Source of the DNA: Takakia lepidozioides
Lineage: Eukaryota; Plantae; Bryophyta
Assembly (NCBI GenBank): GCA_030704615.1
Contig: CM060732.1
Span: forward strand, 38,440,001 to 38,504,000
Length of the DNA stretch: 64,000 nucleotides
Direction: 5' to 3'
Part shown: positions 1 to 62,768 of the stretch, in pieces
Numbering within the stretch: the first letter of the stretch is position 1
Layout: every line of letters starts with the position of its first letter
Translations under genes and position numbers: made by a program
The notes under the pieces: model-generated
Database searches by the model: none
What the model was told of the DNA's origin: nothing
Seen by the model: only the letters and a program-made list of their open reading frames with translations

Positions 1-1304
1 CCCCATCCTCCTGCGACAACGAGTACAGGTATATAGACATGTACTCTTTGCGTTGTGTTTTTGGGCCTTTGAAAGGTGTGTATGGGAGATGCAGGCTTCT
101 TTTAGTACTTCCTCCCACTTCTTCCGTTCCTGGCCCACAGCTGGCCCGTTAATCTGCTCTTTGGCTATCAGTGATGGCTATGACATTCTCCCGGCCTCCA
201 GGGAAACCGAAAGACTTGGAACTTTTTCCTATTCTGTGGGATCCTCAGTTGTGTGCGTCGTAGTGATGCAGGCTTCATTTTGTTTATTTAGTCATCCGAG
301 TAGAAACCACACCCACTTCAGTGGAACAAGTTTACAGGAACGTGACTGTAACGGACAACCTGGTCCTCCTTAGATCGGCTCCTTGCGTGATTAGATAAAA
401 CTGATGATGAAAGTCTCTATGTCAGGCACATGCTCCTCTCAGCATTCAAACTGGCACGGATGTGATATATGTGGATGTGATGACCCTGCCAGAGATAGAG
501 ATTGATTGATACAGTAATATACATTAGGGCAATTAGGATCCGCTGAAGATCTGTATTTAGTTGTGTTGGCATGCAGGCAGAGCATAGACTGGCTTCGGCT
601 CGAGTGCATGTCAGAGTCTTTGCATTGTTGAGATAGAAGGTCTGAGAGGCTATCTCGTTTTTCAGTTTCTCAAATGGAAAGGACATTTTTCCTTCCCTGA
701 TTGAAGCTTCTAATATGTTTTTGTAGACTGAGCATGATGAGTTGCTCTGAATTATGACAGTTGGATCTTGTCTGTCCCACCTGCCATGAGTGGTGCTTGC
801 TGTAGGATCAGTTATCTGCTAACCAAAACAGTATTGAAGTTTGTATGGGCAGCATGTTGAAGATCACCACACTCAAAGACATTAGCGATTTGGATTGATT
901 GTTGGTCAATCAAGCAGAGATAGCTACCATTAGACAGTGGGATGGTGGATGGATATTAGAGGAATGCTCTAGTTCTGGCCAAGACTAATCGTCCATTGAA
1001 GTTTCAAGACAGGTGGGGCCATGCTGGTGGGATGGCAGATTATTGTCGAAGGACAGAGTTGGGTGAAACAATAGCTGAGGAGGGATGTGAGTGTTGTTCA
1101 CAATCAACCTGGCTTGAAGAGTGGCCTCCCCCAGGACAAGCTTGTTCCGTATGTTCTCAAACTTTGTTGTGCATGACGCAGAGCAAGATGACAGACTTGC
1201 AGAAATGTTACAAATAGCACTCACCATTAAAGGCTGCAGCATTTACAAATTTCTCATGCTCTTGCAGCTCTTGCTCACAGATCAAGCAATGAGCATAGAA
1301 CCGC

Positions 1305-1640
1305 CCTGGCAGGAGTTCATCTCAGATCCTTCACGCTGGCGGGACTACAGGTCTGACAAGGTAATGGTATCTTCATTTGGGACACAAGAGCAACTGAAGC
1401 TCACATGCTGATATTTTGCGGACTGGATGTAATCCAATGTACTGGCTAAGAATGTAAAAAAACAACAATAGTGGATCTTCCCATTGTTGTGAGCAGGTTG
1501 TTCTTCCTTGTGAGCAGGTCATGAAATTTGGCTGGTCAAGGTTGGCCCTTGTTATTTGATCACAGAGAAGTCCAAGAGCACCAGACTCCAGACATAGCTG
1601 CAAGAAGGAGGTCCACTGGATGGACAGTTGGTCAAACCCT
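1305..1640 (+). other. Conserved upstream (probably 5'UTR) exon blocks shared by the three PPR paralogues
   Basis: The block ggcaggag...acaggtctgacaag|gt (~1305-1362) recurs at ~11245-11300 and ~16425-16472. The block cacag|agaagtccaaga...(~1560-1640) recurs at ~12005-12085 and ~16720-16775. Confidence 0.6.
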
Positions 1641-2116
1641 GGGGAACATTTGCCTACACAAGGATGCCCTTTGGCTTGTGCAACGCACCCCTGACATTTC
1701 AGAGGTGCTACCAAAATACAAGACCAATCACAACCTGGTCGTCCTTCTACTGGCAATGTTCACCATGAAGCTCAAGACCAAGAATACAACAGGTGATTCT
1801 CTAAGAATACACGGATTTCAATTTAAACATATGTAGCTCTCACAGTTTAATTCCAACATAGATAACTGCAGCAATTTTTTAACCCTTTCCAGATGTAGTA
1901 CAAGGCCTTTCATCGTGAAGAGATCTATCTTTGAAGTATCTACAAGCTTGGATATATCATGAGATTGAGTGGAAATGTGGGTACTTCAGAGTTTTGCATC
2001 AAACAGGATGCCAGTGTTGAACCAGACAGACGTATTTGTTGAACATCAGACTGGCTGGAGGGGTAGTACATCCACCATTAGAAATGCTTCTGAAGGAGTA
2101 GCAAGGGAGGGAGTCA

Positions 2117-4849
2117 ATGACAACACTGCCAGCGCTTGTGGGGATTCTATGCAAGGCAGGACGATTGAAAGAGGCACTGCACATTCTGAACCAACGAGGC
2201 ACTCAGGCAGATTCCAACACCTATGTCCGTCTCTTGCAAGAGTGCATCAAGTTGAGAGATGTAGCACTCGGAAAACGGGTGCACGCCCACATTATCCAAA
2301 CTGGTTTCAAGCCAAACATTTTTCTACTCAATACTATTGTGAACATGTATGCCAAGTGTGGAAGCCTTGTGGATGCACTCCAAGTGTTCAACAAGATGCC
2401 TGAACGGACTTTGTTTACACAGAATATCATGATAGCAGGATATGCCAGGCATGGTTATGGTAGGAAGGCTTTCATGATCTATGAACAAATGCAACAGGAA
2501 GGAATTATGCCTGACAGGGTCACGTTCATTTGCATTCTCAATGCGTGTGCCAGCTTAGGAGCTCTGCAAAGGGGCAAAGAGGTCCATGCTGATGTCATCA
2601 AAGCCCGAATAGCGCCAGATATCATTCTTGAGACTGCCCTTGCTGACATGTATGCCAAATGTGGGAGCATGAAGGATGCACATCAAGTGTTTGACAATAT
2701 GGCTGAACGAAATGTGGTCTCATGGAACGTGATAATCGGAGGATATGCTCAGCATGGGTGTGGGAGGGAGGCTTTTGAGACCTATGAACAAATGCGTCAG
2801 GAAAGGGTGCTGCCCGACAAGATTACATTCATATGCATTTTGAATGCCTGTGCAAGTCTAGGATCTCTGGAAAAGGGCAAAAAGGTGCACGTTGACATCA
2901 TCAAAGCTAGAATTGGGGCACACATCATTCTGGAGACTGCCCTTGCTGACATGTATGCCAAATGTGGGAGCATGAAGGATGCACAAAAAGTGTTTGACAA
3001 TATGACTAAACGAAATGTTGTCTCGTGGAGCGTGATTATCGGAGGTTATGCTCAGCATGGGCTTGGTAGGGAGGCGTTGGAGATCTATGAGCTAATGTGG
3101 CGGGAAGGGGTGACACCGGACAGAGTCACATTTATTTGTGTCCTCAATGCGTGTGCGAGCCTAGGAACCCTGGAGGAGGGAAAAAAGATCCATGCAGACA
3201 TCAAACGAGCTGGAATGGGGCCAGATATCATTCTGGAGACTGCCCTTTTTGGCATGTATACCAAATGCGGGAGTATGAAGGATGCGCGACAAGTGTTTGA
3301 TAATATGGGCAAACGAGATCTGGTGTCGTGGAGCGCAATGATTGCAGGATATGCCCAGCATGGACTTGGTGCGGAGGCTTTTGATATCTATGAGCAAATG
3401 CAGCGGGAAGGAGTGAAGCCCGACAGTGTAACCTTCATTTCCATTCTCAATGCGTGTGCCAGCCTAGGAATCCTGGAGGAGGGGAAAAAAGTTCATGCCG
3501 ACATCATCAAAGCTAGAATCCCAGCATACATTAATTTGGAGACGGCACTTTTTGCCATGTATGCTAGATGTGGGAGTATAAAGGATGCCCGTCACGTTTT
3601 TGACAAAATGCCTCAAAGAAATGTGGTCTCGTGGAATGCGATGATAACAGGATATGCTCAGCATGGGCTTTGTAGGGAGGCTTTCGAGATCTATGAGCAG
3701 ATGCAACTGGAAGAAGTGATGCCCGACAGGGTCACATTCATCTGTGTTCTCAATGCGTGTGCCAGTCTAGGCGCTGTGGAGAAGGGCAAAAATGTCCATG
3801 CTGATATCGTCAAAGCTGGAATTGCGTCATATATTAATTTGGACACTGCACTTGTTGATATGTATGCGAAATGTGGGAGTATGAAGGATGCACGTGAAGT
3901 CTTTGCCAACATGGCTGAACGAAATGTTGTCTCATGGAATGCGATGATTGCAGGATGTGCTCAGCATGGGTGTGGTATGGAGGCACTACAACTATTCGAA
4001 CAAATGCAACAGGAAGGCCTGAAGCCAGGCAGTGTCACATTTATCTCTCTTCTCTCTGCATTCAGTCATTTGGGTCTAGTGGAAGAAGGCCTTCACTACT
4101 TTGATTCCATGATTCGAGATCATTGTGTCACTCCTACAGTGGAGCATTTTGGCTGCATAGTGGACCTTCTTGGCCGCGCAGGGCGATTGCATGAGGCAGA
4201 GGATTTCATAAATCAAATGCCAATTGATCCAGATGGTAGGGTGTGGGGGGCCTTGCTTGGCGCATGTAGAATTTATGGCTGTGTGGAATTAGCAGAACAT
4301 GCAGCAAAATGCCTAATGAAGTGGGATCCGCAGCATGTGGCAACTTATGTGTTACTCTCGAATGTCTATGCGGCAGCTGGCAGGTGGGCTGATAAAGCAA
4401 ATGTGAGAAAAATGATGGAGGACAGAGGTGTCACAAAGGAGCCAGGGCATAGCTGCATTGAGGTGGACAACTGGGTGCACACATTTGTCGTAGAAGACAA
4501 ATTGCATCCACAAATTGCGGAAATCCATGACGAGCTGAAGAGATTGTCTAGGCAGCTGAAGGAGGCCGGGTATGTCCCTGACATGCGTTTTTTCTTGCAT
4601 GATGTGGAGGAGGAAGAAAAGGAAGTTTCTCTTTGCCATCACAGTGAGAAGCTGGCTATTGCCTTTGGGCTCATGAGCACACCCCCTGGGACACCTATCC
4701 GTGTTATCAACAACCTGCAGGTGTGTGCTGACTGCCACACTACCACCAAGTTTATCTCGAAGATTGTTGGCCGAACTGTTATGGTACGGGATGCTAACCG
4801 CTTTCATCACTTCCAAGATGGGGCTTGTTCTTGTGGGGATTACTGGTGA
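2117..4849 (+). CDS. PLS-class PPR protein with E1/E2 and complete DYW (PG-box type, C-to-U) deaminase domain; PPR paralogue 1
   Basis: 910-aa intronless ORF. 20 PPR motifs in 101-aa L-S-P triplets ending P2-L2-S2, then PGHSCIEV (PG box), HHSEKLA, CADCH and C-terminal CSCGDYW. The ancestral start is probably ATG 1975, now out of frame (see findings). Confidence 0.95.
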   Translation: MTTLPALVGILCKAGRLKEALHILNQRGTQADSNTYVRLLQECIKLRDVALGKRVHAHIIQTGFKPNIFLLNTIVNMYAKCGSLVDALQVFNKMPERTLFTQNIMIAGYARHGYGRKAFMIYEQMQQEGIMPDRVTFICILNACASLGALQRGKEVHADVIKARIAPDIILETALADMYAKCGSMKDAHQVFDNMAERNVVSWNVIIGGYAQHGCGREAFETYEQMRQERVLPDKITFICILNACASLGSLEKGKKVHVDIIKARIGAHIILETALADMYAKCGSMKDAQKVFDNMTKRNVVSWSVIIGGYAQHGLGREALEIYELMWREGVTPDRVTFICVLNACASLGTLEEGKKIHADIKRAGMGPDIILETALFGMYTKCGSMKDARQVFDNMGKRDLVSWSAMIAGYAQHGLGAEAFDIYEQMQREGVKPDSVTFISILNACASLGILEEGKKVHADIIKARIPAYINLETALFAMYARCGSIKDARHVFDKMPQRNVVSWNAMITGYAQHGLCREAFEIYEQMQLEEVMPDRVTFICVLNACASLGAVEKGKNVHADIVKAGIASYINLDTALVDMYAKCGSMKDAREVFANMAERNVVSWNAMIAGCAQHGCGMEALQLFEQMQQEGLKPGSVTFISLLSAFSHLGLVEEGLHYFDSMIRDHCVTPTVEHFGCIVDLLGRAGRLHEAEDFINQMPIDPDGRVWGALLGACRIYGCVELAEHAAKCLMKWDPQHVATYVLLSNVYAAAGRWADKANVRKMMEDRGVTKEPGHSCIEVDNWVHTFVVEDKLHPQIAEIHDELKRLSRQLKEAGYVPDMRFFLHDVEEEEKEVSLCHHSEKLAIAFGLMSTPPGTPIRVINNLQVCADCHTTTKFISKIVGRTVMVRDANRFHHFQDGACSCGDYW

Positions 4850-6766
4850 TTCATGCATGATAGAGATGCATTGCTGCACATGTAAGGGCAGGCAGGTCAG
4901 AAAGTATCAGTCTTCATAAGCAAAGGGCGAAATTGAAAAATGATTGTGTCACTAAGTGGTGCTGCACTTTCTGTGGGCTGAACATGGTGATGACCACAAT
5001 CCCAGTGCAGTTACTGCACAATAGCGACTATACGACTTTATTGCGTAAAGTCACAGCAGACCTTACAGCAGCGATTTGTGGACATGAATGAAATTGGAGG
5101 TTGGCAATCTTTTGAAGATCGTCATTCAGACAACGGTTTTTAGGTTCTGTGATCTTGGTGGTCTTAGCAAGAGAAGGAAGTGTAACACCCAGCTGAGTTA
5201 GTGAGCATACAGCTCTACACACAACCCATGTAGGCACCAATGTATGTATAGTACCCATGAAGAAAGTCATCAAAATCTGGGGGTTCGGAAGTTTTGCACC
5301 AAAGAAGGAAGGAAATGGCCATGCTCAAAAGAGTAAGGGAAGACTCTGCTTGGAGGTGATTATCATTGGCTGAACTCCTGAACATGTACTTTCTCAATAC
5401 AGTTTCAACCAAATTCCCCCTACTTCCAAAAGAGCAGAAGATGTTGTCAAAGTTTTTACTCTGTACATGTAATGTACACTCCAAATGTTCAGATTGACCT
5501 CCCACGTTTGTATCATGATCAATCCTGACTGAAACTCTGTTAGTCTGTATAAGATTTAGAGTACCCAGGGCCTGGCAAATTTGCATGGAGCCCAGGAGAA
5601 ACCAATCTATCTGCTATGACAAACTGGTCAGAATCTCTTGCATTACACTCTACCCACAATCAGCTTTCACAGTTTGCATGTTCATGATGCCCACTCTCTT
5701 CAGTTCCACATTAGTACAGGAAATAGGATCCTGAAAGGGAGAAGCACAGCAGAGAATTCAGAAGATGTGGAATAGGGGAAGGTACACAGCAAGGAGTAGG
5801 AGTACAGTTCAGTTCTCCCCCATTGTGTTTGCTCCGCATGGATCTGGAAGACATCGAATGTGATTCTCAAATTTATGACAATCTGCTGCCGATCTTGCGG
5901 CCATAGCGGAGCACTTCACAAATTGCAAACATGAGAGACTAAGAAATTGCTCGAAAGCGTCCACGAAATGCAGATCCTCAACAGCGCAATGCTGCACAAA
6001 CAAACAGCAAATCTGTCTCCCACACCCTTCCGGCGTTGAATAGGTGTGGATGAACATCGTCCATGGCGGATGGGCATGTAATCCGCAGGGGCAAGCTGTG
6101 AATGCTCTTTTCTTTTTCTCTTGCGCAGTGGAAGGCGAGATCAAAGCAAGAATTGGATCGAGTAATCCTGGAACTCTTCATCTCAGAATTCCCTTTGAAA
6201 GAAGGCTTGTCAAGTTCGTCTGTGTGGTGTATCCTGATAAGTAGGAGTTGAAGTTTGTCGGATTGTAACTTGAAGATAGTGAGGATCACGAGATGTGTTG
6301 GAACCAGAGCAGTGTCACCGAAAGCTCTGAGGTCAGAGGATTATATTTCAAGCATGGAAAGGGTTGTTTCTGACATTTCTTGTTCAATTGAGTGTCTGGG
6401 GCAATAACCCTCAAAATGTTTTCGTGGCAGTCTGTGCGCAGTTGCAAATCGGGGATGCACTCAAGCAGTAGTAACTCTCGCCGTGGTGAAGTTTGTTGAG
6501 ACTTATTGTATAGGATTAAGCTTGGTTATCTATCTCTACTGAGCTCGTTATCGTGGGTTATGGTTTGGAATTCGTGTCAGGCCATGGAAGAGATGACAGT
6601 GGCTGGGATGGAAGCTTGAGTCAGTACTTTCGAGGACGTTTTCTTTTAATTCAGTTTCCAAGTTCTGTGGGTTCTGACAAAGCCGAGGTTTGCTTCTACT
6701 TCTCCGAGTCGATTCAAGTGCCCTGATATCATTCCCATCTGGAAAGGCGAGATTGGTTTGGCGGCC

Positions 6767-9247
6767 ATGGATGTAGAGCACCCTCAGCTGGATGGTAGGG
6801 ATACGAACCGGGATACTTGGTCAACACCGATGGAAGAGGAGAATTCTGGGCTCATAGAAAGAGCTCGCAAGGTGGACGATTATAGCTCTGCTATAGCCTC
6901 AAAGCTCTTGGAAGGCTGGACCCTCTTGAATGAGCATTGCCCCGCATGCTATACTCCTCTTGTTCGCAACCGGTAAGTCCTTGTTACGAAACGCGCCGCA
7001 TCTGTTGGAAGAAAAGGTGTGCAACAGCTTCGATCTCAGAAGTACATGACTGACCTCAGCACCTCTGTCAATATGCCTTTGTCTTATGCAAGCAGTATCA
7101 AAGTGAGGCCCTTAGTTGGGTGTGGCATGACATTGAACATGACTGCGCTAAACAGTGACCGTTTGTATTCCAGGAATGCTGTAGATGTGGTAGCTTGCTC
7201 AGAAATGTCAAGCTTCTTTCTTTGCAGTATTTTCCTTCAAACGGAAATGGATACATCGTGGAAGGTCGATCCAGTGCTGCATGAACTGCTGGTTTAGGAG
7301 AGACTCCATTTTCTCCATTTCAAAGATGGCCAACATTTTCACATGAGAATAACTAGCTGATCTGTGGTAACCTTCTGAAATGGGTTGCCACTGTATTGTG
7401 TCTAGTCTGTTCTTCAAGACATATTGTGATGATGAATGTGTGTGAATGGTGGATTCCCTGTGGCAGAAGTCAGGATGCTGGAGAAGATCCAGAGTTTATT
7501 AGTTTATGTCAACCTTGTACGCAAAGGAGATTAGGTGGACTTTCAGTGACAACTGTAGCCTGAAAATAGTGTTGGTTCTGCAGACAAAAGAAGATGAAAT
7601 GTGTGGCATGCAACCAATGGGTGGTGACAGAGGAGGAACTTGCCAGTAAACTTCAAGAGCAGAGAGTCAAAGAATCGAGAGAATCAATTGAGACGTCCCA
7701 AATAGACACGCCTCTTACAAGTGACGAAACCTCTATCCTCCGGAGCACTAACCTGCCGTTTAGTCATATCCCTTCAGCTGGTGAGGCTAGCGGGAGGTCC
7801 AGTGGTGGCAATCATGTTAGGGTTGCAAGTCGGCGTGATCAAGATCAAGAGGCTGAAGAGAGGAGCTCCAAGAGATTGGAAGTCTTTCCTGGTGAGTGAC
7901 AGGTTCTTCCTCATCTCTCGGGTCATATGGATACAGGTAGCTCTTGGTTGCTTTATCCAGTTTCTGCCATCACCAGGTTGTTGGACAATTTAAACCACAA
8001 AATAGGGTCTTTACAGGGGCGCCCTTACCTGAAAGTATCTGAAAGTACCTGAAAGTATCTGTGGTTCACAGAGGGATGTCTACAGCACAGATTTTGCGGC
8101 TCATGTGAAATTTGATTCCATGTATCCTCAACTAATACCCAATTGTTTCTTAATCACACAATTCCTGGATCTACCATGTGGACACCTTCATAGTATGGAT
8201 CTTTTTGGGTACCTTTCTGGACGTTGGAAGTGCAGGCGTTGGAGCAGTGAGGCAAGTTGAAATCCTGAACAAAGGGCAAGAGGATGTTTCTTGTCCACCA
8301 GCTTCTTCACTTTCAAAGGGTTGTATGCTTCCTAAGGTGAGAAACTCTAGTGCCACGATCACCATGGCAATGCTTTGTTCACTCTGATTTGGTTTGCTTT
8401 CTTTATGGCCCAATCACGAGTTCTTCATCATTGCCAACGGTGTCTGCAATCTTCATAATTTCAAGTTGGAGAATTATTGACAGTGGAACACACTCCCAGA
8501 AGAAGGCCATCTCACACTCAAATGTGTATTGGTTGGCGAATTGGACGACCCAGATGGGATACGAGCGTCCATGCTTTTACTAGATGAGAATGCTATTGAT
8601 TATAGGAGAAACAATTATGCAGGTGGACCTGGCAGTAGTTCCGGCTGCAGTGCTGAGAAGTACGATGTCCACCCTGTTTCAGAAGATGGAGGTGAGCTAT
8701 TGCCTCCTCTTCCCTGTTATGTCTGTTGTTTGTTTGTCTCTCTCTGTGCCTTTAGTGGACGTAATAGATTTCATTCTTGTTGGCTTGCTTCAGTGTTAAA
8801 GATTGAATGATGTTCTTATGTACAACTGCGCATGTTTGGCAGGAAATACGCCAACTTATCGCTGTGTCTCAGGATATTCATGGTTTAAGACAGGTACACG
8901 CACCTGTAACCATCTCATACACTTTTACATGCCTGTGTTTCTAAGTGTGAGGACCAGAAGTAGTATTTAGTATGATGTCAATGTCAGCCCTGAAATCAAC
9001 ACTTTATCCCATTAGAAAATTTGGCTCTGTGCATGCACAATGGCAATGTCTGGCTGGACTTAGTACCTGGTGAGTCAAAATCCCACATCTGCTTCCTTTT
9101 AGGGTATTCTGCAAGGATGCAAGAAACTGTATAATCTTCATAGTGAAATGGATGTTGACTTGTGTGCAGCTGCTTAACGCGCTTGCTGCATGTGTGCAAG
9201 CAATCGCGGGGGTGAAGTCTCTTATCAAAGAGGTTGAGCACCTATAG
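6767..9247 (+). CDS. ZNRD2: Sjogren syndrome/scleroderma autoantigen 1-like zinc-ribbon protein (Auto_anti-p27 family), 6 exons
   Basis: Motif IASKLLEGWTLLNEHCPACYTPLVRNR/QKKMKCVAC. Approximate exons 6767-6972, 7584-7891, 8236-8336, 8624-8691, 8843-8893 and 9170-9247 join in frame through GT-AG junctions and end in a helical tail LLNALAACVQAIAGVKSLIKEVEHL*. Confidence 0.85.
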
Positions 9248-9913
9248 CCTAGCTGGCCAAAGCACAGTCAAGTGAACTTCGACAGATCTATTTTCTCAGT
9301 GGGAATGGGTATCTATGAGTCATTGACTACCACCAACAGAAGGTAGAGTTTTGAGAATTCTAACACCCACCTCCACTGAAGCTTTATATAGTTCAGATGT
9401 TACGAAGATCAGTGCTTACTGGATCCTGGTGGATACGGACCAAACCCAATGAAGTACAAATCCAGATTTCAGCACCGTATTTTGTAAGAGATGACATGGC
9501 AACATGGCTGGAATCTATGATGGCTTGCACTCACCTGTCTGTTGAAACTCACGAGTCATATCCCATTTCCCTGAGCAATTGTGGAATTGACGAGTCTAAA
9601 GGCAGATTTTTGTTGCAGAGCACAAGGTTATCTTTCTGGAATCTTTCTTGGCATTTTCAATCCCTTTGCATCTCACTCCAGGTTATGATGTACAAAGCTT
9701 GCACAGTTTTCTGCTCAGAGCTCTGGTCTTGTTACATACTCTGTACAAGACTTCCACAGCCCTGTGGTGCTGGTGGCTTGTGGGGGCTTTAATCAATATT
9801 CTTCTTCCCCCAATCTGGACATAACTTCCAGGATTTCCTCATGACTAAGGTTCCGAAGAATTTGCCATCTCACTCTCACGCTTCAAGAACCTCTTCTGAC
9901 ACCTTCCTTTTTA

Positions 9914-10335
9914 CACCGCCAATCCCCAGAAGAACGGACCCCGCCTCGTAAGTGATGAAAGCGGTTAGGGTCCCCTACAACAATTGCTCGCCCAACAATC
10001 TTCGAGATGAACTTGGTGCGAGTGCCAACATTCTAAAACGATGACCCAGCTTCTCACTGTAGCGGGAAACAAGGAGTCCACATAATGCAATGAAAAGCAC
10101 GCCTCCCGCACATATCCAGCCTCCTTCACCCCTCCGTAAAGAACTGGTCTCATTTCTCGTTTCGTTATGCAGCGTAATAGCCAGCCACGAGTACGAATGC
10201 AATACAAAAAGTATAATGCACAGTGCCGATTGCACTCTGTGTAATGCACACCTACGGCATAAGATTCAAGGAATCCACTCGGCAGAAAAGCTCTCCAGCT
10301 TAGCATGGAGCTCCTCAATGCGTGGACACAATTTA
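9914..10335 (-). pseudogene. Inverted, degenerate DYW-domain remnant
   Basis: Across frames the minus strand reads IEELHAKLESFS ... VKEAGYVREACFSLHYVD ... YSEKL ... TKFISKIVGRAIVVGDPNRFHHL ... SSGDW, colinear with the DYW domain of paralogue 1. It has frameshifts, deletions and an insertion. Confidence 0.8.
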
Positions 10336-12337
10336 GGGCAGAGTGACGTGGATGCCTGACGTGTAGTAAAGTGGCTTAACTTCAGTGTGACGTGTTTCTG
10401 ATGTAGTTTGAGTAGAGAGGCCTTTGGATTGATGTGATGCGTGCATTTCTTTAATGTTGATTGCACCGATTTGCCGTAGTGCGTCTGGAGTGCAGAGCAA
10501 CAATTGAAGGGCAGAGAGAGCGAGAGAGAGAGAGAGAGGTAATTATGGCTGCCAGTGTTGACTTGACATTTCATAGTCCCTTGCATATCAACCACCCAGG
10601 AGCCAGACGCTGGGTAGGGAAGCTACGCAGCCCACGACAATCTGATTACAGGGAATTGATTGTTCATGTAAAGGCTGCATCGAACCAGACAGCACAACGT
10701 ACACTCCACCGCTGCGCTTTAGCCCCGAATCTGACGTAGAAAAATGTGGCTGTGAGGGCGGACAGGGCAATATATTCAGTGGACGGTGCTTGCTGTAGCC
10801 TTGTCGCCATACACCTGACTCCCAGTTTGGACGGACCAGAAGAGAGGCAGGGGAAGGGAGATAGAAGGAGAGCATCATGGGCCCACAGCCGGCTCTGGGG
10901 CAGAGGGGGTGATCATGATGCCCACAGGAAGCCATTATTGGACAAGAATGCACTAGAAAACACAAACAGAGAACGCACTGGAAAATTTTATTATGTTAAT
11001 CACAGTAAGTGGCCAATCATCTCTGCCCTTCAAGTTTAACTCGACATCCTCTGGAAAGACAAAGTACGCATCGCATCAGAAAAAGAGATGCCTTCTGTCT
11101 CCTTGTTGCATGATGCTTACTAAAGCAAAGGAAATTTTATCTGCACATGTTAACAACCTGTCTAGGACCTGTGGATAGAGAGAAATTTTTTGGAAACCTT
11201 AGAGCAATCCTGACCGAGACTGGAACCAACCATAGAACGGTTTTGACAGGAGTCCATCTCAGATCATTTGCTGGGGTGGGAGAACAGGTCCAATAAAGTC
11301 AGGCTATGTCTGTCATTATTCATTGTTCTGTAGTTTCTAGGACAGAAAGGACGCTAATCCTTCCCTGAATGAAACTGGCTGTATTTTGGGGACAGTTTCA
11401 GCTGCTTTGTTCAGAGTCACACCTCCATAGTGGTTCCTATTGTTTGATTTGTTGATTGTTAATACCCAACATCACTGGAGTTTATTTGTACCACGTGGTG
11501 GCTTGTTCTTTTAGTCCAGTTCAGCTACCCTGGTCCCGAATTTCACAGATATGACACATGGCTGCACAAATTCTGTGGAACTGACCTCCTTAATAACTGG
11601 TAGGAGAAGAAGAGGTTATATATTGAGAGCTTACAGTAGCATTCTTCAAGGTTCGGGCATTAGGAATCCATGTCTAGAGGTGTTGGCTTGCCGACCAAGA
11701 AATGAGACATCTGGGGCTGGAGTTCATGTCCTATCCTTCACAATCATGGGAAAACAAATCAAGTACATGATCCTTTTCTGAATGATGCTGATTGTAATGC
11801 GCCCTGGTTACTTGATTATGACTAGTACTTCTATCTGTCACACTTTCTGAAGTGATTCTAATTGCTTGGAGTAGTAGCATTAATGCACATTAGGATTGAA
11901 GTGGTTATGTTCAAACTTGTACCCTGTTATTTGAAGGGATGCTTTGGTCGGCTTTATGATACAGTGGTTAAAGGTATGGACAGTCAGCCACTTGTTCTTG
12001 GTTTTCACAGAGAAGTCCAAGATTGCCAGACTTCAGACAGAAGTGCGCAAAAGAGGCCCATTGGATTGAGAGTTGGTCAAACCATGAGCCTGCTTTAATG
12101 AGAAAAATTGGAGCGCGATCTGGTGATGGTTCTGATGCTCCAGGCCTGGAATATAACGGGTACTACTTTGATGATGATTGAAGGATTCGAACTCAAACAG
12201 ATAGAATTGGTACGGCTTATTCTCAAAGTAGATGGGTGAAGTAATTCCCTAACCATTTCAGTGTGTCCAGAAGGCTGGCCTTATGAAGAGATGTCTCTTT
12301 GGCGCATCTAGGAGCTTTGGGATATATTACGTACTGA

Positions 12338-14695
12338 ATGTATGGCATTCTAACTCAAAGTTTCGAGCTATGCAGGATGGCATTGAAGCAGACACAGTTC
12401 CTTGCTGGACATATGACTGGAAAGAAGGGTAGTACATTCAGTATCACAACTGCTTTTGAAAGAGAACCAAGAGAGCAAGTCGCTAAGATTTCTTCTGGAA
12501 ATTGTTGGGATGTGAGGATTCTATGTAAGGCAGGACAACTGAAAGATGCGGTGCAGATGTTGAACCATCCAGGCATTCAGGCAGACTCGAACACCTATGT
12601 GTGCCTCTTAGAGGAGTGTATCAACATGAAGGACTTGGGAGCTGGAAAGCAAGTGCACAGCAACATTATAAAGTGTGGATTCAAGCCAAACACCTTTCTA
12701 CTCAACACTCTTGTCAACATGTATGCCAAGTGTGGGAGCATTGCGGATGCACGCCTTGTGTTCGACAAAATGCCTGAACGAACTTTGTTCACTTGGACTA
12801 TAATGATGGCCGAATATGCCAGACATGGTTTTGGTAAGGAGGCTTTCAAGATCTATGACCAAATGCGATGGGAAGGGGTGACGCCTGACAAGGTCACTTT
12901 TATTTGCATACTCAATGCATGTGCCAGCCTACGAACTCTTGAAAAAGGAAGAAAGGTGCATGCTGACATCCTGAAATCTGGAATTGCGTCGTACGTAAAT
13001 TTGGAAAACACCCTTATCGACATGTATGCTAAATGCGGGAGCTCGAAAGATGCTCGTCAAGTGTTCAATGAGATGGCTGAACGAGATGTGGTCTCATGGA
13101 GCACAATGATAGCAGGATATGCCCAACATGGGTGTGGTAAGGAGGCTGTTATGATCTATGAGCAAATGGAACGGGAAGGGGTGATGCCTAACAGTATCAC
13201 TTTCATTTGTGTTCTCAATGCATGTGCCAGCTTAGGAGCACTGGAAAAGGGCAAGGAGGTCCATGCTGACATTATCAAATCTAAAATTTGTTCATATCTT
13301 AAGTTGGATAACACCCTTGTCGACATGTATGCTAAATGTGGGAGCATGAAGGATGCACATCAAGTGTTTGACAATATGGTTAAACGAAATGTGGTCTCAT
13401 GGAACACCATGATCACAGGATACACTCAGCATGGGTGTGGTAGGGAGGCTTTTAAAATCTATGAGCAAATGCGACAGGAAGGGGTGATTCCCAACAGGAT
13501 CACGTTCACTTGTGTTCTAAATGCGTGTGCCAGCCTAGGAGCCCTGGAAGAGGGCAAAAAGGTCCACGCTGACATCACCAAGTCTCACATTGCCCCAGAT
13601 CTCATCCTGGAGACTGCCCTTGCTGACATGTATGCCAAATGTGGGAGCATGCGGGATGCGCGTGAAGTGTTTGACAAAATGGTTAAACGAGATGTTGTGT
13701 CATGGAATGCAATGATTGCAGGATACACTCAGCAGGGGAGTGGTAGGGAGGCGTTCGACATCTATGAGCAGATGCAAGAGGCACGGGTGATGCCGAACAG
13801 GGTCACATTCATTTGCTTGCTCAATGTGTGTGCCAGTCTAGGAGCCCTGGAAAAGGGCAAGGAGGTCCATGCTGACATTGTCAGAGCTGGACTTGTGTCA
13901 TATATTAATTTGGAGAATGCCCTTGTTGACATGTATGCCAAATGTGGGAGCATAAAGGATGCACAGCAAGTGTTCAACAACATGTCTACACAAGATGTTG
14001 TTTCCTGGAACGCCATGATCACAGGATATGCTCAGCTTGGGTGTGGTAGGGAGGCTTTTGATTTCTATCAGGAAATGCAACGGAAAGGGGTGATGCCTGA
14101 CACAGTCACATTCACTTGCATTCTCAATGCGTGTTCCACTCTAGGAGCCCTGGAAAAGGGCAAAGAGGTCCATGCCGACATCGTCAGATCTGAGATTGCC
14201 TTCGATGTGAACTTAGAGACTGCCCTTATTGAAATGTATGCCAAATGTGGGAGCATAAAGGATGCGCGTCATGTGTTTGACAATATGGCTAAACAAGATT
14301 TGATCTCATGCAGTGTGATGCTTGCAGGATGTGCCCAGCATGGGTTTGGTAGGGAGGCTTTGCAACTATTTGAACAGATGCAACAGGATGGCTTAAAGCC
14401 AAATGCGATCACTTTTATATCTCTTCTCTCTGCATGTAGCCATGTGGGCCTACTGGATGAAGGCCGTCACTACTTTGATTCCATGAGTCGGGATCATGGC
14501 ATCACTCCTACAGTGGAGCATTTTGGTTGCATTGTGAACCTTCTTGGCCGTGCAGGGCGACTGGATGAGGCAGAGGACTTCATGAACAAAATGCCTATAA
14601 ATCCAGATGCAGGAGTGTGGAGGGCCTTGCTTGGTGCCTGCAGAAAACATGGCAATGTTGAGGCAGCAGAACTTGCGGCAAAAAACATTATCTAG
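12338..14695 (+). CDS. PLS-class PPR protein, paralogue 2; intact leader and 20 motifs, truncated in the E domain
   Basis: 785-aa ORF with the same architecture as paralogue 1. It ends at a TAG where paralogue 1 has AAG (near the end of E1). Confidence 0.9.
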   Translation: MYGILTQSFELCRMALKQTQFLAGHMTGKKGSTFSITTAFEREPREQVAKISSGNCWDVRILCKAGQLKDAVQMLNHPGIQADSNTYVCLLEECINMKDLGAGKQVHSNIIKCGFKPNTFLLNTLVNMYAKCGSIADARLVFDKMPERTLFTWTIMMAEYARHGFGKEAFKIYDQMRWEGVTPDKVTFICILNACASLRTLEKGRKVHADILKSGIASYVNLENTLIDMYAKCGSSKDARQVFNEMAERDVVSWSTMIAGYAQHGCGKEAVMIYEQMEREGVMPNSITFICVLNACASLGALEKGKEVHADIIKSKICSYLKLDNTLVDMYAKCGSMKDAHQVFDNMVKRNVVSWNTMITGYTQHGCGREAFKIYEQMRQEGVIPNRITFTCVLNACASLGALEEGKKVHADITKSHIAPDLILETALADMYAKCGSMRDAREVFDKMVKRDVVSWNAMIAGYTQQGSGREAFDIYEQMQEARVMPNRVTFICLLNVCASLGALEKGKEVHADIVRAGLVSYINLENALVDMYAKCGSIKDAQQVFNNMSTQDVVSWNAMITGYAQLGCGREAFDFYQEMQRKGVMPDTVTFTCILNACSTLGALEKGKEVHADIVRSEIAFDVNLETALIEMYAKCGSIKDARHVFDNMAKQDLISCSVMLAGCAQHGFGREALQLFEQMQQDGLKPNAITFISLLSACSHVGLLDEGRHYFDSMSRDHGITPTVEHFGCIVNLLGRAGRLDEAEDFMNKMPINPDAGVWRALLGACRKHGNVEAAELAAKNII

Positions 14696-15509
14696 GGGGA
14701 TAGCAGCATGCTGTGCTGCTGTCAAACATCTATGCTGCAGCTGGCAGTTTGGACAACAGAGCAAAGGTGAGGAAACTGACGGAGGACAGGTGTCACAAAA
14801 GGAGCCCGTTGTCAGTACAACCAGACGGGGACGAACAGGTGCAGGAGGGGGTTACCTACTGGTGAACTCTTTAACTCCTTGAGGTTACTCAGATTGATTC
14901 ATGGTCTCCGTTTGCATACATTAAGGTGCTAATGCGATCTGCGCAGGCACTTCTATGAACAACAGGACTTGGTCAGATTCTGTAGTTCTGCTTCTGGGTT
15001 CGAGCTCCATCAGGTCCCTGTTACGGTTCTCTGTCTACTGCAATGTACTGTCTGTACATATACACAGGGATGAATAGGCCCGAGGATGAGCTACCTGCTG
15101 GTGACCTCCCATAGGTCCTTGTGACTACTCAAATTTAACCAGGATTTCTAAGGCAGTAAGCTACAAGGATCCCTGCTCTGTTTGCTGTACATACATTTGT
15201 TGTAGAAGGCAGTTTCCGTACCCAAATTGAGGAAATTCATGCTAAGCTGAAGCAATTGTCCAGGAGGATGGAAGTTGCATATGTGGCTGACACACATGCT
15301 TGTCATTGCATCATTTGCCACCACAGTGAGAAGCTAGCCATTGCTTTTGCGCTCATCAGAAGACCACCTTGGGACGCCTATCCACATCATCAGTGTGGTG
15401 ACTGCCACACTGCCACCAAGTTCATCTCGAAGACTGTTGGACGCGTAGTTATTGTATGCAAGGCCAACTGCTTTCACCACGTCCAAGATGGTTTGGGGAT
15501 TACCAGTAA
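14696..15509 (+). pseudogene. Decayed E2/DYW tail of paralogue 2, interrupted by a ~380 bp insertion at the PG box
   Basis: Remnants LLSNIYAAAG, VTKEP, HTFVVE, CHHSEKLAIAFALI, CGDCHTATKFISKTVGR, FHHVQDG and GDYQ*, with deletions and frameshifts. Confidence 0.85.
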
Positions 15510-17025
15510 ACCACATACTACTTGTGGGGGCAAGCAGGATATTGTAGCTTAGCCATATGCAAGTAGTATGAAGGAAGATTCCCTTCATGTTCTCTTACAT
15601 GTCAAGCATGTAACGTCTACCAGCTCAGTAGTTTGGCACCTGCAATGCAAACCAAAATCACTGGATGTCCAGGAGGTTACCCCAAAATCAGCATGAATAC
15701 AATTAGGATGAATTACAAACACGGTGAACTTTCTTTCTGTCAAGAATCTCTGTCTGTGAGGTGTGCAGCTTCACAGACCAACGCAGACAGTGAAATGCAG
15801 TGACCATATCTCTATTTGGTGTCCTTGCAAGCTAGGAGGGCAAAAGCTTTTGACAAATTTGAGATTTGGCAGGCAATCAGAGCTAGTGTGATTAATAAGC
15901 ATAACCTGTAAACTTTCTTTGTAGTTTGTGACGGCCACGGAAGGAGAGACGGAAAGAACTTCATCGATCCCAGGACAAAGTACTGAGAATGACAAGAAAT
16001 GCTTCAGAGACGATCAAGCGATGCCCAAAACCCCGTGTGTGTGTAAGTGAGAGAGAGAGAGAGAAGAGATGGTTTGTGTGCATCCTTTGGGATAGACAAG
16101 TGACGCTATACATACACAAGTTCGAAGAGGCGGTTGTGGAATTTCTAGCTAGAGACCGACTGACTGCAGTCCGGCTTGGGGAATTGATTGTTGGTGGAGC
16201 ACACTATGTTGAGTAGAGCACTGCTAGCCTAGCCCCCATCCGAGATAGACAGTGCCCTGTGGGTGTGATGGCCGTGTTTCGCTCGACTGCAAGAGAGGGA
16301 GGCTTACTCCGCGGGAAGGCTACATTTATTTTCTTTCCTCATTTTGACCGAGGCATTTCGGAACTGTTCAAGGTAGATGTCATAGTGGTGTTCGCATGCA
16401 CCATGTAATGAGCCTGCAACAGGTCTGGCAGGAGTGCCTTCGCAGTGGTAGGACAACAGGTCTAATAAGGTGAGAAGGGAGCTCTGTTTCTACCCAATCA
16501 CTGAAGCTTTGAAAAGCTGGACGATTGTATTGTACTCTGCTTGATGGTTTCGGTTGCTTTGATTGATGTCGAGTCAAAGATCTTTTTTGCTTCACATGCC
16601 GTAGTGGTTTCTATTCAGTTGGTGTTGAGACAATGCTCACAGAGCTTTCAATCTTGTTTGTAGCATGGTCGTTTGAGGTTATGATTAAATCTATATCTTC
16701 TCAGCTGCGAAATACTGGTTTTGACAGAAAACTCCAAGATCGCCAATTTTCAATCGTAAGCGCACAAACGAGGTGCTTACATGGATTGTCCGTCACATCC
16801 TCTTTCGGTGATAGCAGAAATAGCTTGTCGAGCACAATCTGATGACTGGGTTTCAGGCCGAGGATTTTACAGGTATTGCTCCTATGGTGATTCAATGGTC
16901 GCAGTTCAAATGAATTGGTACAGTCATTCTCAAGGTAGGTGTCTTGAGTAGTTTTGTAGCCATGTTCATGTGTAGCGTAGAGATACTTTCTGGAGCTAGA
17001 AGATATACTATGTGCTTGAGTGTCA

Positions 17026-19434
17026 ATGTTTGCAACTAAAATTTTTGAGTCATGTAGAGTGGCAGGGTTGAATCATGCAAAGTTGTTTATTGGACATGAG
17101 ACTGGCTGCAAGTGTATGCGCACCATCACCACAGAGGCAGTCAACAACAAAATTTCTGGTACTTGTGGGCATACAAGGACTCTCTGTCTGGCAGGAGAAA
17201 TGAAAGAGACGCCGCACATTTTCAATCAACGAGGCATTGAGGCAGATTCGAACACGTATGTATGTCTCTTGCAGGAGTGCATCAACATGAAAGACCTAGC
17301 AAAGGGGAAACAGGTGCATGCCCACATTATCCGAAGTGGATTTTTTCCAAACGTTTCTCTTCTTAACACCCTTGTCAACATGTATGCCAAGTGCGGGAGT
17401 CTGGTGGATGCACGGCAAGTCTTTGACAGAATGCCTGACCGAAGTTTGTTTACTTGGACTATAATGATGGCAGGATACGCAAAGCATGGGCATGCTGAGG
17501 AGGCTTTCAAAATTTATGAGCAGATGCAATGCGAGGGGGTGACCCCTGATAGGGTCACATTTATTTGCATTCTCAATGCGTGTGCTAAGCTAGGAGCCGT
17601 GGAAAAAGGCAAAGAGGTCCATGCTGCCATCATCAAAGCTGGAATTGCTGACTATGTAAATTTGGAGACTGCCCTTATCGCCATGTATGCCAAATGCGGG
17701 TGCATGCAGGATGCACGTAAAGTGTTCGACAAAATGTCTGAAAGAGATGTGGTCTCATGGAATGCCATAATCGCAGGATATGCTCAGCATGAGTGTGGTA
17801 GAGAAGCTTTCGATATGTACGACCAAATGCAATGTGAAGGGGTGAACCCCAATAGTGTTACATTCATTTCTGTTCTCAGTGCCTGTGCCAAACTAGGAGC
17901 CCTGAAAAAGGGCAAAGAGGTGCATTCTGACATTATCAGAGCTGGAATTGTGTCGTCTATTAATTTGGAGAATACCCTTGTCGATATGTATGCCAAGTGC
18001 GGGAGCATGAAAGATGCAGAGAGAGTCTTCAACCATATGGCAAAACGAGATGTGGTCTCATGGAACGTCATGATCACAGGATATGCTCATCATGACTATG
18101 GTAGGGAGGCTTTCAAGATCTATGATCAAATGCGACAGGAAGGGGTGATGCCCAGCAGGATCACTTTCATTTGCCTCCTAAATGCATGTGCCAACGTAGG
18201 AGCCCTGGAAAAGGCCAAAGAGGTCCATGCAGACATCCTCAAAGTTGGAATTCCATCATATATTAAATTGGAGAATACTCTTGTGGACATTTATGGAAAA
18301 TGTGGGAGCATTAAGGATGCGCGTGAAGTGTTCAATAATATGGCTATACGAGATGTCGTCTCATGGAGTGCACTTATTGCAGGATATGTTCAGCAGGGGT
18401 GTGGTATGGAGGCTTTCAAGCTCTATGAGCAAATGCAACAGGAAGGTGTTACACCTGACAGGGTCACGTTCAACTGCGCTCTCAATGCTTGTGCCATTCT
18501 AGGAGTTCTGGAAAAGGGCAAGCAGGTCCATGCTGACATCATCCAATCGGGAATTGGTTCAGATGTGAATTTGGAGAATACCCTCGTCAACATGTATGCC
18601 AAATGCGGTAGCACCAAGGATGCGCATCAAGTTTTTGATAATATGACACAACAAGATGTTGTCTCCTGGAACGCCATGATTGCAGCGTATGCTCAGCATA
18701 GGTCTGATAAGGAGGCTTTTAAAATGTTCGAAGAAATGCAATGGAAAGGGGTGACACCTGACAGGTTCACGTTCACTTGTGTTCTCAATGTATGTGCCAG
18801 CCTAGGAGCCCTGGAAAAGGGCAAAGAGGTGCATGCAGACATTATGAAATATGGTATTGCATCAGATATTAATTTGGAGACGTCACTTGTTGAAATGTAT
18901 GCCAAATGTGGGAGCATAAAGGATGCGCATCAAGTCTTTGACAACATGGGTAAACGAGATGTGGTCTCATGGAGTGCTATGATTGCAGGATATTCCCAGC
19001 ATGGGTGTGGTAGGGAGGCCCTTCAACTAATTGAACAAATGCAACAGGAAGGATTAAAGCCCAATGGTATTACCTTTATGTCCCTTCTATCTGCATGTGG
19101 CCGAGTGGGCCTACTAGATGAAGGCCGCCACTACTTTCATTCCATGACGCGAGATCATGGCCTCACTCCTACATTAGAGCATTTTGGTTGCATGGTGGAC
19201 CTTCTTGGCCGTGCAGGACGTTTGGTTGAAGCAGAGCATTTGATTGACAAAATACCAATGAAACCAGATTCTGGAGTGTGGAGGGCTTTGCTTGGTGCCT
19301 GCAGAACTCATGGCAATGTGCAGCTAGCAGAACGTGCAACCAAAAGCATTCTTAAGACTGATCCACAGCACACTGCAGCTAGTGCTGCTGTCGAACGTTT
19401 ATGCTGCAGCTCGCAGATAGGACAAAAGGGCTAA
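17026..19434 (+). CDS. PLS-class PPR protein, paralogue 3; intact leader and 20 motifs, frameshifted at the start of E2
   Basis: ~802-aa ORF from ATG 17026. A 2-nt loss at ~19381 (gct a gtg ctg ctg tcg aac versus act tat gtg tta ctc tcg aat in paralogue 1) gives a non-homologous tail. Confidence 0.9.
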   Translation: MFATKIFESCRVAGLNHAKLFIGHETGCKCMRTITTEAVNNKISGTCGHTRTLCLAGEMKETPHIFNQRGIEADSNTYVCLLQECINMKDLAKGKQVHAHIIRSGFFPNVSLLNTLVNMYAKCGSLVDARQVFDRMPDRSLFTWTIMMAGYAKHGHAEEAFKIYEQMQCEGVTPDRVTFICILNACAKLGAVEKGKEVHAAIIKAGIADYVNLETALIAMYAKCGCMQDARKVFDKMSERDVVSWNAIIAGYAQHECGREAFDMYDQMQCEGVNPNSVTFISVLSACAKLGALKKGKEVHSDIIRAGIVSSINLENTLVDMYAKCGSMKDAERVFNHMAKRDVVSWNVMITGYAHHDYGREAFKIYDQMRQEGVMPSRITFICLLNACANVGALEKAKEVHADILKVGIPSYIKLENTLVDIYGKCGSIKDAREVFNNMAIRDVVSWSALIAGYVQQGCGMEAFKLYEQMQQEGVTPDRVTFNCALNACAILGVLEKGKQVHADIIQSGIGSDVNLENTLVNMYAKCGSTKDAHQVFDNMTQQDVVSWNAMIAAYAQHRSDKEAFKMFEEMQWKGVTPDRFTFTCVLNVCASLGALEKGKEVHADIMKYGIASDINLETSLVEMYAKCGSIKDAHQVFDNMGKRDVVSWSAMIAGYSQHGCGREALQLIEQMQQEGLKPNGITFMSLLSACGRVGLLDEGRHYFHSMTRDHGLTPTLEHFGCMVDLLGRAGRLVEAEHLIDKIPMKPDSGVWRALLGACRTHGNVQLAERATKSILKTDPQHTAASAAVERLCCSSQIGQKG

Positions 19435-19776
19435 GGTCAGAAAATTTATGGAAGTTATAAATGTCAGAAATGTACCAGGGCAGAGCAGCAGGTGGACAAC
19501 CAGGTGCATACATGACAGATGCTTAGCATTGCATGATTTGAAAGGAGCAGAAGGAATTTTCTTTGTGCCAGCACAGTGAGAAGCTGGCCATTTCTTCTTG
19601 GCTCATCAGCACACCCCCTCAAGCGCCTATCCATGTCATTATTCATTACATACTGTTAGGTGTGTGAAACTGCCATACCACTTTTGACGATTGTTGGGCG
19701 GCAAGTCGTTGTACAGGATACCAACCACTTTCACCACTTCCAAGATATGGCTTGTTCTTTTGGGGATTACTGGTGA
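19381..19776 (+). pseudogene. Decayed E2/DYW tail of paralogue 3
   Basis: Remnants VLLSNVYAAA, an in-frame TAG, PGQS, VDNQVHT, CQHSEKLAI, CH, FHHFQD and final GDYW*(ggggattactggtga), with several deletions. Confidence 0.85.
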
Positions 19777-37940: not shown

Positions 37941-38830
37941 CTAATCGACTTTCACCTCGATCACATCTTTCCTAGGAGCCTCCTTAGACTTGGGCACCGT
38001 CACGAGCAGCACTCCATTCTTGTACTCTGCCTTCACCATTTCCAGCTCGACGTTGTCGGGAAGGATCAAACGGGTAACGAAACTGGCATAAGACCGGGCG
38101 GCCATTTTGTCATCACCCCCGCTTTTGTCTGGATCTACTTTGTGCTCAGCCTTGATGAGCAAAGTTCCATCTTCCACAAGCACTTTTACCTCGTCCTTGG
38201 TAAAACCTGGCAAGTCAAACCTCAGCTTGAAAGCATCGTCATGCTCTATTACATCCCAAGGCGGACGCAACAATCCTGGTGGAGTGAAGTTCTGGAGGAG
38301 CTGCGAAGGGGAGCTAGGGAAGAGAGAATCGCTGAAGAATCGATCAACCGTTTCCATCATCTGCTGCAAAGTCCTTGTGGTATTGAAGATGGGATCAAAC
38401 AGGTCTGCACGATCCAAGTAAAGTTAGAGACTGTCAACATGAAACACACGTAATTTACTGTACCGTCTACATGCGCAAAACCCAACATATTGCAACTTGA
38501 GCACTAACCGAGAGGTCCCCCCTGGAATGGTGCAAGCTCATTTCTGTTTCTGCCCCTGTTTCTCCCACGGGAATAAGTAGCTGGAGCTCGGCTGCCCTCT
38601 TTTCTCTCAAGCTGCCCCGAGGCAGGATCTTTAGGATTGTTCCCAACGGCCTGCCCTGGGTTCTCATGGCCTGTGACTTTGCCCTGATCATGAGGAGTAG
38701 TTGCAGAGGTGAAGATGGGTCGAATGCATGCCTCCACCTTTAATGGCCTCACACTTTTCAATCCCCTACCCGTCAGCCTCGAAGCTAGCATCCGAGAAGT
38801 CATCATTGTACAAGTGCAAGCTGCCTGCAT
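37941..38830 (-). CDS. Organellar (plastid HSP21-type) small heat shock protein, 2 exons
   Basis: Transit-peptide-like exon 1, intron 38508-38405, Met-bristle-like DPIFNTTRTLQQMMETVDRFF and an alpha-crystallin domain (PWDV...RFDLPG...AEYKNGVLLVTVPK). Confidence 0.9.
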
Positions 38831-44126: not shown

Positions 44127-44499
44127 AGCCCTTGGTCAGGTCCTCTCCATCCACCACCAAAAGCCCCAGAAGGCCATCATGAACAAAGCCGACCTTGGCC
44201 ATTGTGCTGACGTGGAGCACGAAATCAACACCCAAGGGTTCCCTGCAACCAGAAAGCCAACGAACAGACTGTCAGAAATTGAGGAGAACCTTGTATAAGA
44301 ACAGATTGAAGCACTCATCTTACAAGCTTGTGACCATTTTCTCTTGCCTATAAAGTTACGCTCTGTAATGTAGACATATTCCCAGTTCCTACTACCTTTT
44401 AGTACCTACGCTCACAGACACATCCAAAGCTTGCTTCATGCCTCACTCTATCATTACAGCTCTGTCTATTTTTCCATAGGGAATCACCCATTCCCGCAT

Positions 44500-45195
44500 C
44501 ATTGCTCATAGGTCTCCAAAGCCTCCATCCGCGCCTTTGCTGTGCATATCTTGCAATCATCGCACTCCACGACACCACATCTCGTTCAGCCATACTGTCG
44601 AACACTTCCTTTGCATCCTTGATGCACCCATATTTGGCATAAATGCAATCCACCAGGGCAGTGTTCAGAATGACATCGGGTACAGCATGGTACTAACAGG
44701 AGCCAAAAGCCCACATTTGTAGGATGGACAAACTTCTTTACATCCTACATTAAGAAAAAGCCACACCTGGCGATTGCAATTGTCCCACCATCGTGAAGAA
44801 ACTCATGCCAGCTCTGCTCCGTGCTGCAAATTCAGGGCCGAGTCTGATGAGAGGGCAAAACAGGCTGAAATAGGTCGAAGAAGAAAGTGCCCTCACCACC
44901 TTGTCCTCGACCTTGTGTCATGACCCATGGAGGATTTGACTGACCATGAACCCAAGAGGACCTCTCGTGTCTGCTGCTTGTGTCTGTAGTCTGGCAATGT
45001 CGGATTGGTCAATGAGAACCACCACGGTGCAGTTGAGCGGGCAGAGATTGAAACACATGATGCGTTAGGGTTCAACCTGTCTGGCATAATTTCCTCATAT
45101 GTCTCCAAAGCCTTCGTACCACACTGCGATCATTGCATTCCACGACATGACATCTTGGCAGCCATTTTGTCGAACACACCCTTCGCATCCTTGGA
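44500..45195 (-). pseudogene. Two captured PLS-PPR (S-P motif) fragments at ~44500-44685 and ~45060-45195
   Basis: PDVILNTALVD..YAKYGCIKDAKEVFDSMAERDVVSWSAMIARYAQ..MEALETYEQ and KDAKGVFDKMA..SWNAMIA..ALETYEEIMPDR, both with frameshifts. Confidence 0.85.

Positions 45196-54577: not shown

Positions 54578-62768
<8,191 letters not shown>

Follow-up and report, generated by a model that had tools for sequence, protein, structure and literature searches.

Purifying selection appears to have outlasted the DYW deaminase in two PLS-class PPR genes of Takakia lepidozioides

Three plus-strand paralogues of the PLS class of PPR genes lie between 1.2 and 19.8 kb of a 64,000-nucleotide stretch from the bryophyte Takakia lepidozioides (contig CM060732.1 of assembly GCA_030704615.1, positions 38,440,001 to 38,504,000 of the forward strand; we call the whole stretch the window and count coordinates from its first letter). 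In two of these genes, copies 2 and 3, an open PPR array is followed by the decayed remains of an E2-DYW end, and it is strongly supported by the substitution patterns described below that the arrays stayed under purifying selection after the deaminase was lost. An earlier reading made by a model from the letters alone (hereafter the sequence-only reading) had proposed just such continued selection on the RNA-binding part, and the comparison of arrays with tails upholds it, with ratios of nonsynonymous to synonymous substitution rates (dN/dS) of ~0.3 in the arrays, neutral change in the tails, and no disabling lesions in the arrays where 45-50 would be expected. The remaining paralogue, copy 1, has an intact deaminase and a small deletion that cuts it off from its N-terminal leader. 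We consider it probable, if well short of certain, that the locus goes back to an old local triplication, after which copies 2 and 3 would have been retained as DYW-less PLS-E1 genes and copy 1 would have become a null only recently.

Open arrays and fossil deaminase tails

Pfam recognizes many PPR repeats in all three copies (with PPR family E-values of 1e-105 to 1e-113 for copy 1), and among the three open reading frames (ORFs) the E motif, the E+ motif and a full-length DYW_deaminase match are found in copy 1 only. The three proteins align colinearly over 724 codons with zero indels, and in each of them the motifs can be parsed as a degenerate first P, an L-S pair, five P1-L1-S1 triplets, P2-L2-S2 and E1. 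The identical 20-motif architecture described in the sequence-only reading is therefore real, with 21 PPR-type motifs per copy, or 20 without counting the degenerate first motif. DNA identity among the copies is 74-79%, and their flanks can no longer be aligned. Pairwise identity of the 303-bp P-L-S triplet units is 70-82%, and units from the same gene resemble each other about as much as units from different genes. The triplet arrays, at 2343-4054, 12717-14400 and 17369-19100, look either recently amplified or strongly constrained toward a consensus, and the variation among triplets is concentrated at the specificity residues.

Copies 2 and 3 both end in or just after E1, and behind this point their old reading frames are badly broken. 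Copy 2 meets a TAG (14693-14695) inside E1, near the end of the motif, and beyond this stop there are deletions of 1 and 9 bp, then ~350-380 extra bases at the position of the PG box, and finally a DYW remnant with deletions of 29, ~13 and 10 bp plus small insertions; the tail as a whole carries 10-11 indel events in addition to stops. The DYW remnant is still recognizable by its Pfam profile, scoring 48.9 bits over 15187-15492, and the E motif scores 19.3 bits, which is below the cut-off. The extra bases (~14809-15186) lack terminal repeats and occur just once in the window. In copy 3, a 2-bp deletion at ~19380 follows a complete E1 and leads through 18 out-of-frame codons to a stop at 19432-19434. 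Seven indels are found in this tail, namely the 2-bp deletion, a 95-bp deletion and five more, and the zinc-site region can no longer be read in one frame; the last 30 codons, with the family's terminal motif ending at 19773, score 33.6 bits to DYW_deaminase. If lesions were placed uniformly, all of them would fall in the tail with a probability of 4e-8 (copy 2) or 9e-7 (copy 3). The sequence-only reading had described copies 2 and 3 as genes with leaders and open arrays whose tails independently gathered indels, stops and an insertion, and the alignment agrees with it on each of these points. Copies 2 and 3 appear to have lost their deaminase ends independently, each early on its own branch. 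We considered a founding lesion shared by the two and rejected it, since no common indel or stop is visible in the tail alignment and any branch common to them is short (~0.06 by rough arithmetic from the branch lengths); a shared first hit that has become invisible may have occurred. An intron as the source of the tail lesions was likewise rejected, since these are numerous and small and shift the reading frame either way.

Selection along each lineage was followed by placing changes on branches with three-way parsimony and tallying them for each codon position. In the DYW region the remnants have flat spectra, with 12/10/10 changes at first, second and third positions in copy 2 and 10/8/8 in copy 3, as against 1/3/13 in the DYW domain of copy 1 (Fisher p=0.0015 and 0.011). 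The arrays show a third-position excess in every copy (79/53/121 in copy 1, 51/41/86 in copy 2 and 61/48/109 in copy 3). Over all sites, the tail branches are 0.18-0.19 long in copy 2 and 0.16-0.19 in copy 3, and the corresponding branches at 4-fold-degenerate array sites are 0.15 and 0.25. Because the tail lengths equal or approach the 4-fold lengths, the tails have drifted neutrally for approximately the whole terminal branch of copy 2 and for 64-78% of that of copy 3. Over the same terminal branches, array dN/dS amounts to 0.30-0.37 in copy 2 and 0.29-0.32 in copy 3 (copy 1, 0.24-0.30); for the two genes that lost their deaminase it is thus 0.29-0.37 rather than near 1, the value named in advance as speaking against selection. 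The maximum-likelihood omega of the arrays is 0.319, and the path from copy 2 to copy 3, which consists of the two DYW-less branches only, has an omega of 0.29 (bootstrap confidence interval 0.24-0.39). At the substitution and indel densities of the tails the arrays should have collected their 45-50 disabling lesions, and the P value for seeing none is ~1e-20; at most ~6-7% of the neutral time of the tails could have been neutral for the arrays as well. All 13 P/S motifs keep canonical pairs of fifth and last residues in every copy. With dN/dS well below 1 and no lesions in the arrays, the case for continued selection on the RNA-binding part stands. Coordinates of the genes, their tails and their upstream relics are collected in Table 1.

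Table 1. Positions of the three PPR genes and of associated leader, tail and PDF-motif sequences in the window
Feature	Position	Strand	Content	Basis
Copy 1 main ORF	2117-4849	+	910 aa: PLS array, E1 4235-4336, E2 4337-4438, intact DYW deaminase 4439-4846	Pfam, alignment
Copy 1 leader	1975-2141	+	ATG 1975; homologous to N-terminal leaders of copies 2 and 3; separated from PPR frame by 8-bp deletion	
Copy 1 PDF first-half relic	1295-1363	+	donor-like site AAG/GTAATG follows	tblastn with Diphasiastrum PDF-PPR proteins, translation
Copy 1 PDF second-half relic	1566-1792	+	PDF changed to PDS; copy-1-specific ~90-nt insertion with in-frame stop 1689-1691	
Copy 2 ORF	12338-14695	+	785 aa: leader ~12338-12490, 21-motif PLS array, E1 from 14609 shortened by TAG 14693-14695	
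Copy 2 fossil tail	14696-15509	+	E2 remnant 14713-14808 (shifted frame), extra bases ~14809-15186, DYW remnant 15187-15509	
Copy 2 PDF first-half relic, diverged	11711-11767	+	1-bp loss at donor-like site, out of phase with second half	
Copy 2 PDF second half	12011-12159	+	LPDF kept, open frame; not in frame with PPR ORF via nearest conserved acceptor-like site	
Copy 3 ORF	17020-19434, first ATG 17026	+	802 aa from that ATG: leader, 21-motif PLS array, complete E1 19270-19371	
Copy 3 fossil tail	19381-19776	+	E2 remnant with TAG in old frame, DYW remnant, old stop kept 19774-19776	
Copy 3 PDF first-half relic	16422-16469	+	frameshift and in-frame stop	
Copy 3 PDF second-half relic	16728-16872	+	PDF changed to PIF; frameshifted within block	

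Copy 1 and the question of a partnership among the copies

Copy 1 scores 67.9 bits for E_motif, 24.3 bits for Eplus and 144.4 bits for DYW_deaminase, the last over positions 1-93 of a 93-position profile, and its DYW domain keeps HxE, CxxCH and the terminal DYW. Within the first motif, at ~2141/2142, it has lost 8 bp that both other copies keep. Read from ATG 1975, the leader frame therefore continues out of register until it meets a stop at 2403. The first ATG of the PPR-DYW frame, at 2117, lies ~9 residues ahead of the first motif, and a test for an organelle-targeting sequence at the N-terminus that reads into the array is negative for copy 1. The sequence-only reading had seen copy 1 in the same way, as a gene with an intact E/DYW end that is frameshifted off its leader, and we can now place the break at a single deletion. 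Ahead of ATG 2117 there are start codons at 1975 and 2008 in a different frame, so the PPR-DYW frame would probably be translated poorly from the ancestral transcript. The deletion is the sole lesion in 2730 nt of copy 1, and, assuming that the gene now evolves neutrally, this event would date back less than ~0.01 substitutions per site, compared with branch lengths of 0.15-0.33. Most likely, copy 1 has very recently become a null allele or pseudogene; a role as an untargeted editor without a leader is possible, but nothing supports it.

The complete PLS-E1-E2-DYW layout of copy 1, its zinc-binding motifs and the purifying selection on its DYW domain are what it has in common with the single-protein PPR-DYW editors of mosses, such as PPR56 and PPR65. 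Copy 1 differs from these editors in the 8-bp deletion that disconnects its frame from the leader, and all three genes at this locus differ from them in carrying upstream relics of a PDF motif. In a word search, the best relatives of copy 1 (from Diphasiastrum, Cryptomeria, Ginkgo and Ceratodon) are 48-57% identical, and at this distance none of them can serve as an orthologue for a between-species test. Approximately 35 of the 120 best matches to copy 1 in this search, counted by hand, have no DYW Pfam hit. An isolated C-terminal DYW fragment of 38 codons lies on the minus strand at 9919-10032 (32.5 bits), with no PPR array attached, and its DNA is ~80% identical to the end of copy 1.

An intact deaminase in one copy and deaminase-less arrays in the other two invite the question of whether they work together. 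The sequence-only reading had raised the possibility of a locally split editosome with complementary lesions. In such a scheme, copies 2 and 3 would recognize the RNA and copy 1 or another protein would provide the DYW domain in trans. Copies 2 and 3 do keep E1 and canonical binding residues, an intact and constrained DYW domain is present 10 kb away, and trans-complementation by DYW proteins is established in angiosperms. But copy 1 owns a full 21-motif array with a different code. It shares 4/13 and 3/13 P/S motif codes with the other two copies, which have 6/13 in common with each other, mainly in the five motifs nearest the C-terminus; its identity to the others is 42-46% at nucleotide-specifying residues and 67-69% in the scaffold. 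Because the codes differ, the three proteins would read different RNAs. Being leaderless as well, copy 1 would probably not reach the organelle, and thus the only DYW protein at the locus does not look like a site-unspecific donor acting in the same organelle. On the side of the presumed recipients, copies 2 and 3 lack E2, copy 2 stopping inside E1 and copy 3 being frameshifted at the start of E2, so that neither offers E1 and E2 together for docking. Finally, the lesion in copy 1 is very recent and the DYW losses are old, and a partnership of complementary lesions cannot explain why the arrays were retained for so long. The idea of a split editosome at this locus does not survive these comparisons well, and we regard it as quite unlikely.

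It is somewhat less improbable, although still doubtful, that copies 2 and 3 serve as site-recognition factors with a deaminase donor encoded elsewhere in the genome, among its hundreds of DYW proteins, in which case split editing would have evolved independently in a bryophyte-grade plant and without MORF partners. If true, plants would have arrived at a division of labor in RNA editing on more than one occasion, and the fossil tails would date the transition.

Leaders, upstream relics and the weighing of alternatives

Upstream of each copy are two exon-like blocks that correspond to the halves of an OSB-type PDF motif and are split by an intron-like gap. Annotated PLS-PPR proteins of Diphasiastrum, Ceratodon and Calypogeia (lycophyte, mosses and liverwort) carry this motif ahead of the array, and the blocks match these PDF-PPR proteins; a Pfam search with the pieces finds no family. 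The acceptor-like and donor-like sites of the blocks are conserved in all three copies, yet every copy carries stops, frameshifts or a phase break in its PDF relics, as judged block by block. The claim in the sequence-only reading that the paralogues share upstream exons is therefore right as far as conserved exon-like blocks in all three copies are concerned, and has to be qualified in that each of the relics is damaged. Directly ahead of the leader start region, a TGA is common to all three copies, and the full protein could consequently be made only from ATG 12338 in copy 2 or ATG 17026 in copy 3. There is modest evidence that the leader is translated, in that the leaders are stop-free and every indel in the leaders of copies 2 and 3 has a length divisible by three.

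Could the open arrays simply be those of dying genes? All three copies might be pseudogenes at different stages of decay, and their open arrays would then be no sign of present function. The upstream PDF relics, broken in every copy, are what one would expect of such genes, and copy 1 demonstrates that single fresh lesions do occur at this locus. Death at the time of DYW loss is nevertheless excluded, as the tails have been through a full branch of neutral change and the arrays are lesion-free with dN/dS of ~0.3. At most, silencing could have come very recently, in no more than the final 6-7% of the branch, and we consider the pseudogene explanation unlikely, though it deserves to be kept in mind. 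Alternatively, functional paralogues whose PLS triplets are close to the consensus might have kept the array ORFs open through gene conversion. The similarity of triplets within and between genes means that there are many potential donors, in a genome with ~2000 PPR genes (PMC13386178). Yet, among the three genes, identity stays at or below 85% in every 150-nt window, and among 15 triplet units at or below 82% in every pair. The DYW domains, moreover, are at least as conserved between paralogues and have not been repaired, and the arrays retain specificity codes particular to each copy, all of which makes conversion very unlikely as the agent that kept them open. That the lesions are errors of assembly or sequencing is harder still to believe. 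The single 8-bp deletion of copy 1 could be an error or a haplotype variant, but 7-11 indels per tail, with up to 95 bp deleted and ~350 bp inserted, together with a neutral substitution spectrum, have the character of evolutionary decay.

Several points do weigh against our preferred reading that copies 2 and 3 are retained, working DYW-less genes. Selection is inferred from three paralogues in one genome with no close orthologue, and the conversion test covered the three genes and 15 triplet units of this locus only. As the triplets are as alike within genes as between them, it is not entirely certain that units at the same position are orthologous. Both proteins would have E1 without E2, which angiosperm E-type editing factors do carry, and this makes an editing role in particular doubtful. 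The leader evolves at an approximately neutral rate with no codon-position bias, although targeting peptides often evolve at a near-neutral rate. And if the ancestral start or targeting signal lay in the PDF exons that are now broken, the genes would depend on putative initiation at an internal ATG.

With these reservations, we favor a course of events that begins with an organellar RNA-editing gene of the PLS-E-DYW type, one member of a very large PPR family, which long ago underwent a local triplication, tandem or proximal. On its own branch, each of copies 2 and 3 would have lost the deaminase end, independently and early, and would have persisted as a DYW-less PLS-E1 gene in which the leader, the 21 PPR motifs and E1 are under purifying selection, with E2 and DYW decaying neutrally behind the new stop codons. 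Copy 1 would have remained a normal, constrained single-protein editor until a very recent microhomology-type deletion of 8 bp in its first motif. The lesions would then be separate events of birth and death in a large gene family and would not be functionally complementary. The anatomy, lesions, rates and selection are what the sequence shows, and beyond them we infer that the shortened proteins may be expressed and functional; most likely they still bind specific organellar RNAs, which they could stabilize, help to splice, block, or present to a deaminase acting in trans.

Relation to known systems and neighboring sequences

A pattern of truncation followed by retention has been described for CRR21 in the Brassicaceae, and the Takakia locus is a clear new example of it rather than a new principle. 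Hayes, Giang and Mulligan (2012) found that CRR21 genes in Brassicaceae without the editing site are truncated near the 17th repeat, that the remaining coding part is under strong negative selection and the sequence past the truncation has diverged, and they proposed an unrecognized function (PMC3441922). In both cases an editing-factor PPR gene has been truncated at its C-terminus, with selection on the array and divergence downstream. The CRR21 study, though, compared orthologues across species and linked truncation to the disappearance of an editing site, and CRR21 was already an E-class protein, whereas here two paralogues in a single non-seed plant genome are involved and the complete E2-DYW end that they lost can still be seen as a fossil. 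A role in organellar RNA metabolism other than editing also has a precedent, as DYW-less PLS-class proteins of Physcomitrium patens function in mitochondrial splicing (Ichinose et al. 2020, as cited in PMC9459714). Copies 2 and 3 resemble them in being moss PLS-class proteins without a deaminase, but the Physcomitrium factors are conserved and experimentally characterized.

The angiosperm E and E+ editing factors of the PLS class provide the other obvious comparison. These proteins obtain a DYW domain in trans, CRR4 from DYW1 and E+ proteins from DYW2 or MEF8. Like copies 2 and 3 they combine a PLS array and E motif(s) with DYW-type ancestry and have no deaminase of their own. They differ in keeping both E1 and E2, and often E+, where copies 2 and 3 keep at most E1, and in working with MORF proteins and with DYW donors that have short arrays or none, where copy 1 has a full one. 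To our knowledge, MORF-type partners are not known in mosses.

Why should a pair of shortened genes in one bryophyte matter? Early-diverging land plants have large PPR families with many annotated deaminase-less proteins, and whether these are debris or working genes is at issue. T. lepidozioides itself has 2016 PPR genes and 750 DYW genes, and C-terminally truncated PLS and E proteins are numerous in early land plants (PMC13386178). The locus described here comes with an internal clock, because the dead DYW remnant times the loss of the deaminase and the adjoining array reports on selection over that same time. Applied genome-wide, a comparison of arrays with fossil tails could tell pseudogenes apart from truncated PPR genes that have been retained. 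Copies 2 and 3 also offer two concrete candidates for learning what a former editor does when it only binds RNA.

An exact look-up of the three ORFs in public assemblies gave no match, a result that carries no information on expression. A Pfam search of 20 other ORFs between and around the copies found no transposon domain, hence there is no sign that the three copies were carried by a transposon. Farther along the window, the minus strand has two more first halves and one second half of a PDF-like motif, one with a stop, and ~2.4 kb from them a lone fragment of ~70 codons made of S/P PPR motifs (41646-42108 and 44477-44683). Between these two stretches is an ORF of 414 amino acids (42879-44123, minus strand) with no Pfam match and no usable Protein Atlas match. 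The host genes that adjoin the cluster include a Rieske-domain, pheophorbide a oxygenase-like gene on the plus strand at 30425-31750 (ORF 30425-31183), a small heat-shock protein (HSP20) gene on the minus strand at 37941-38417, and exons of an ABC transporter with ABC_membrane domains on the plus strand at 54566-59425.

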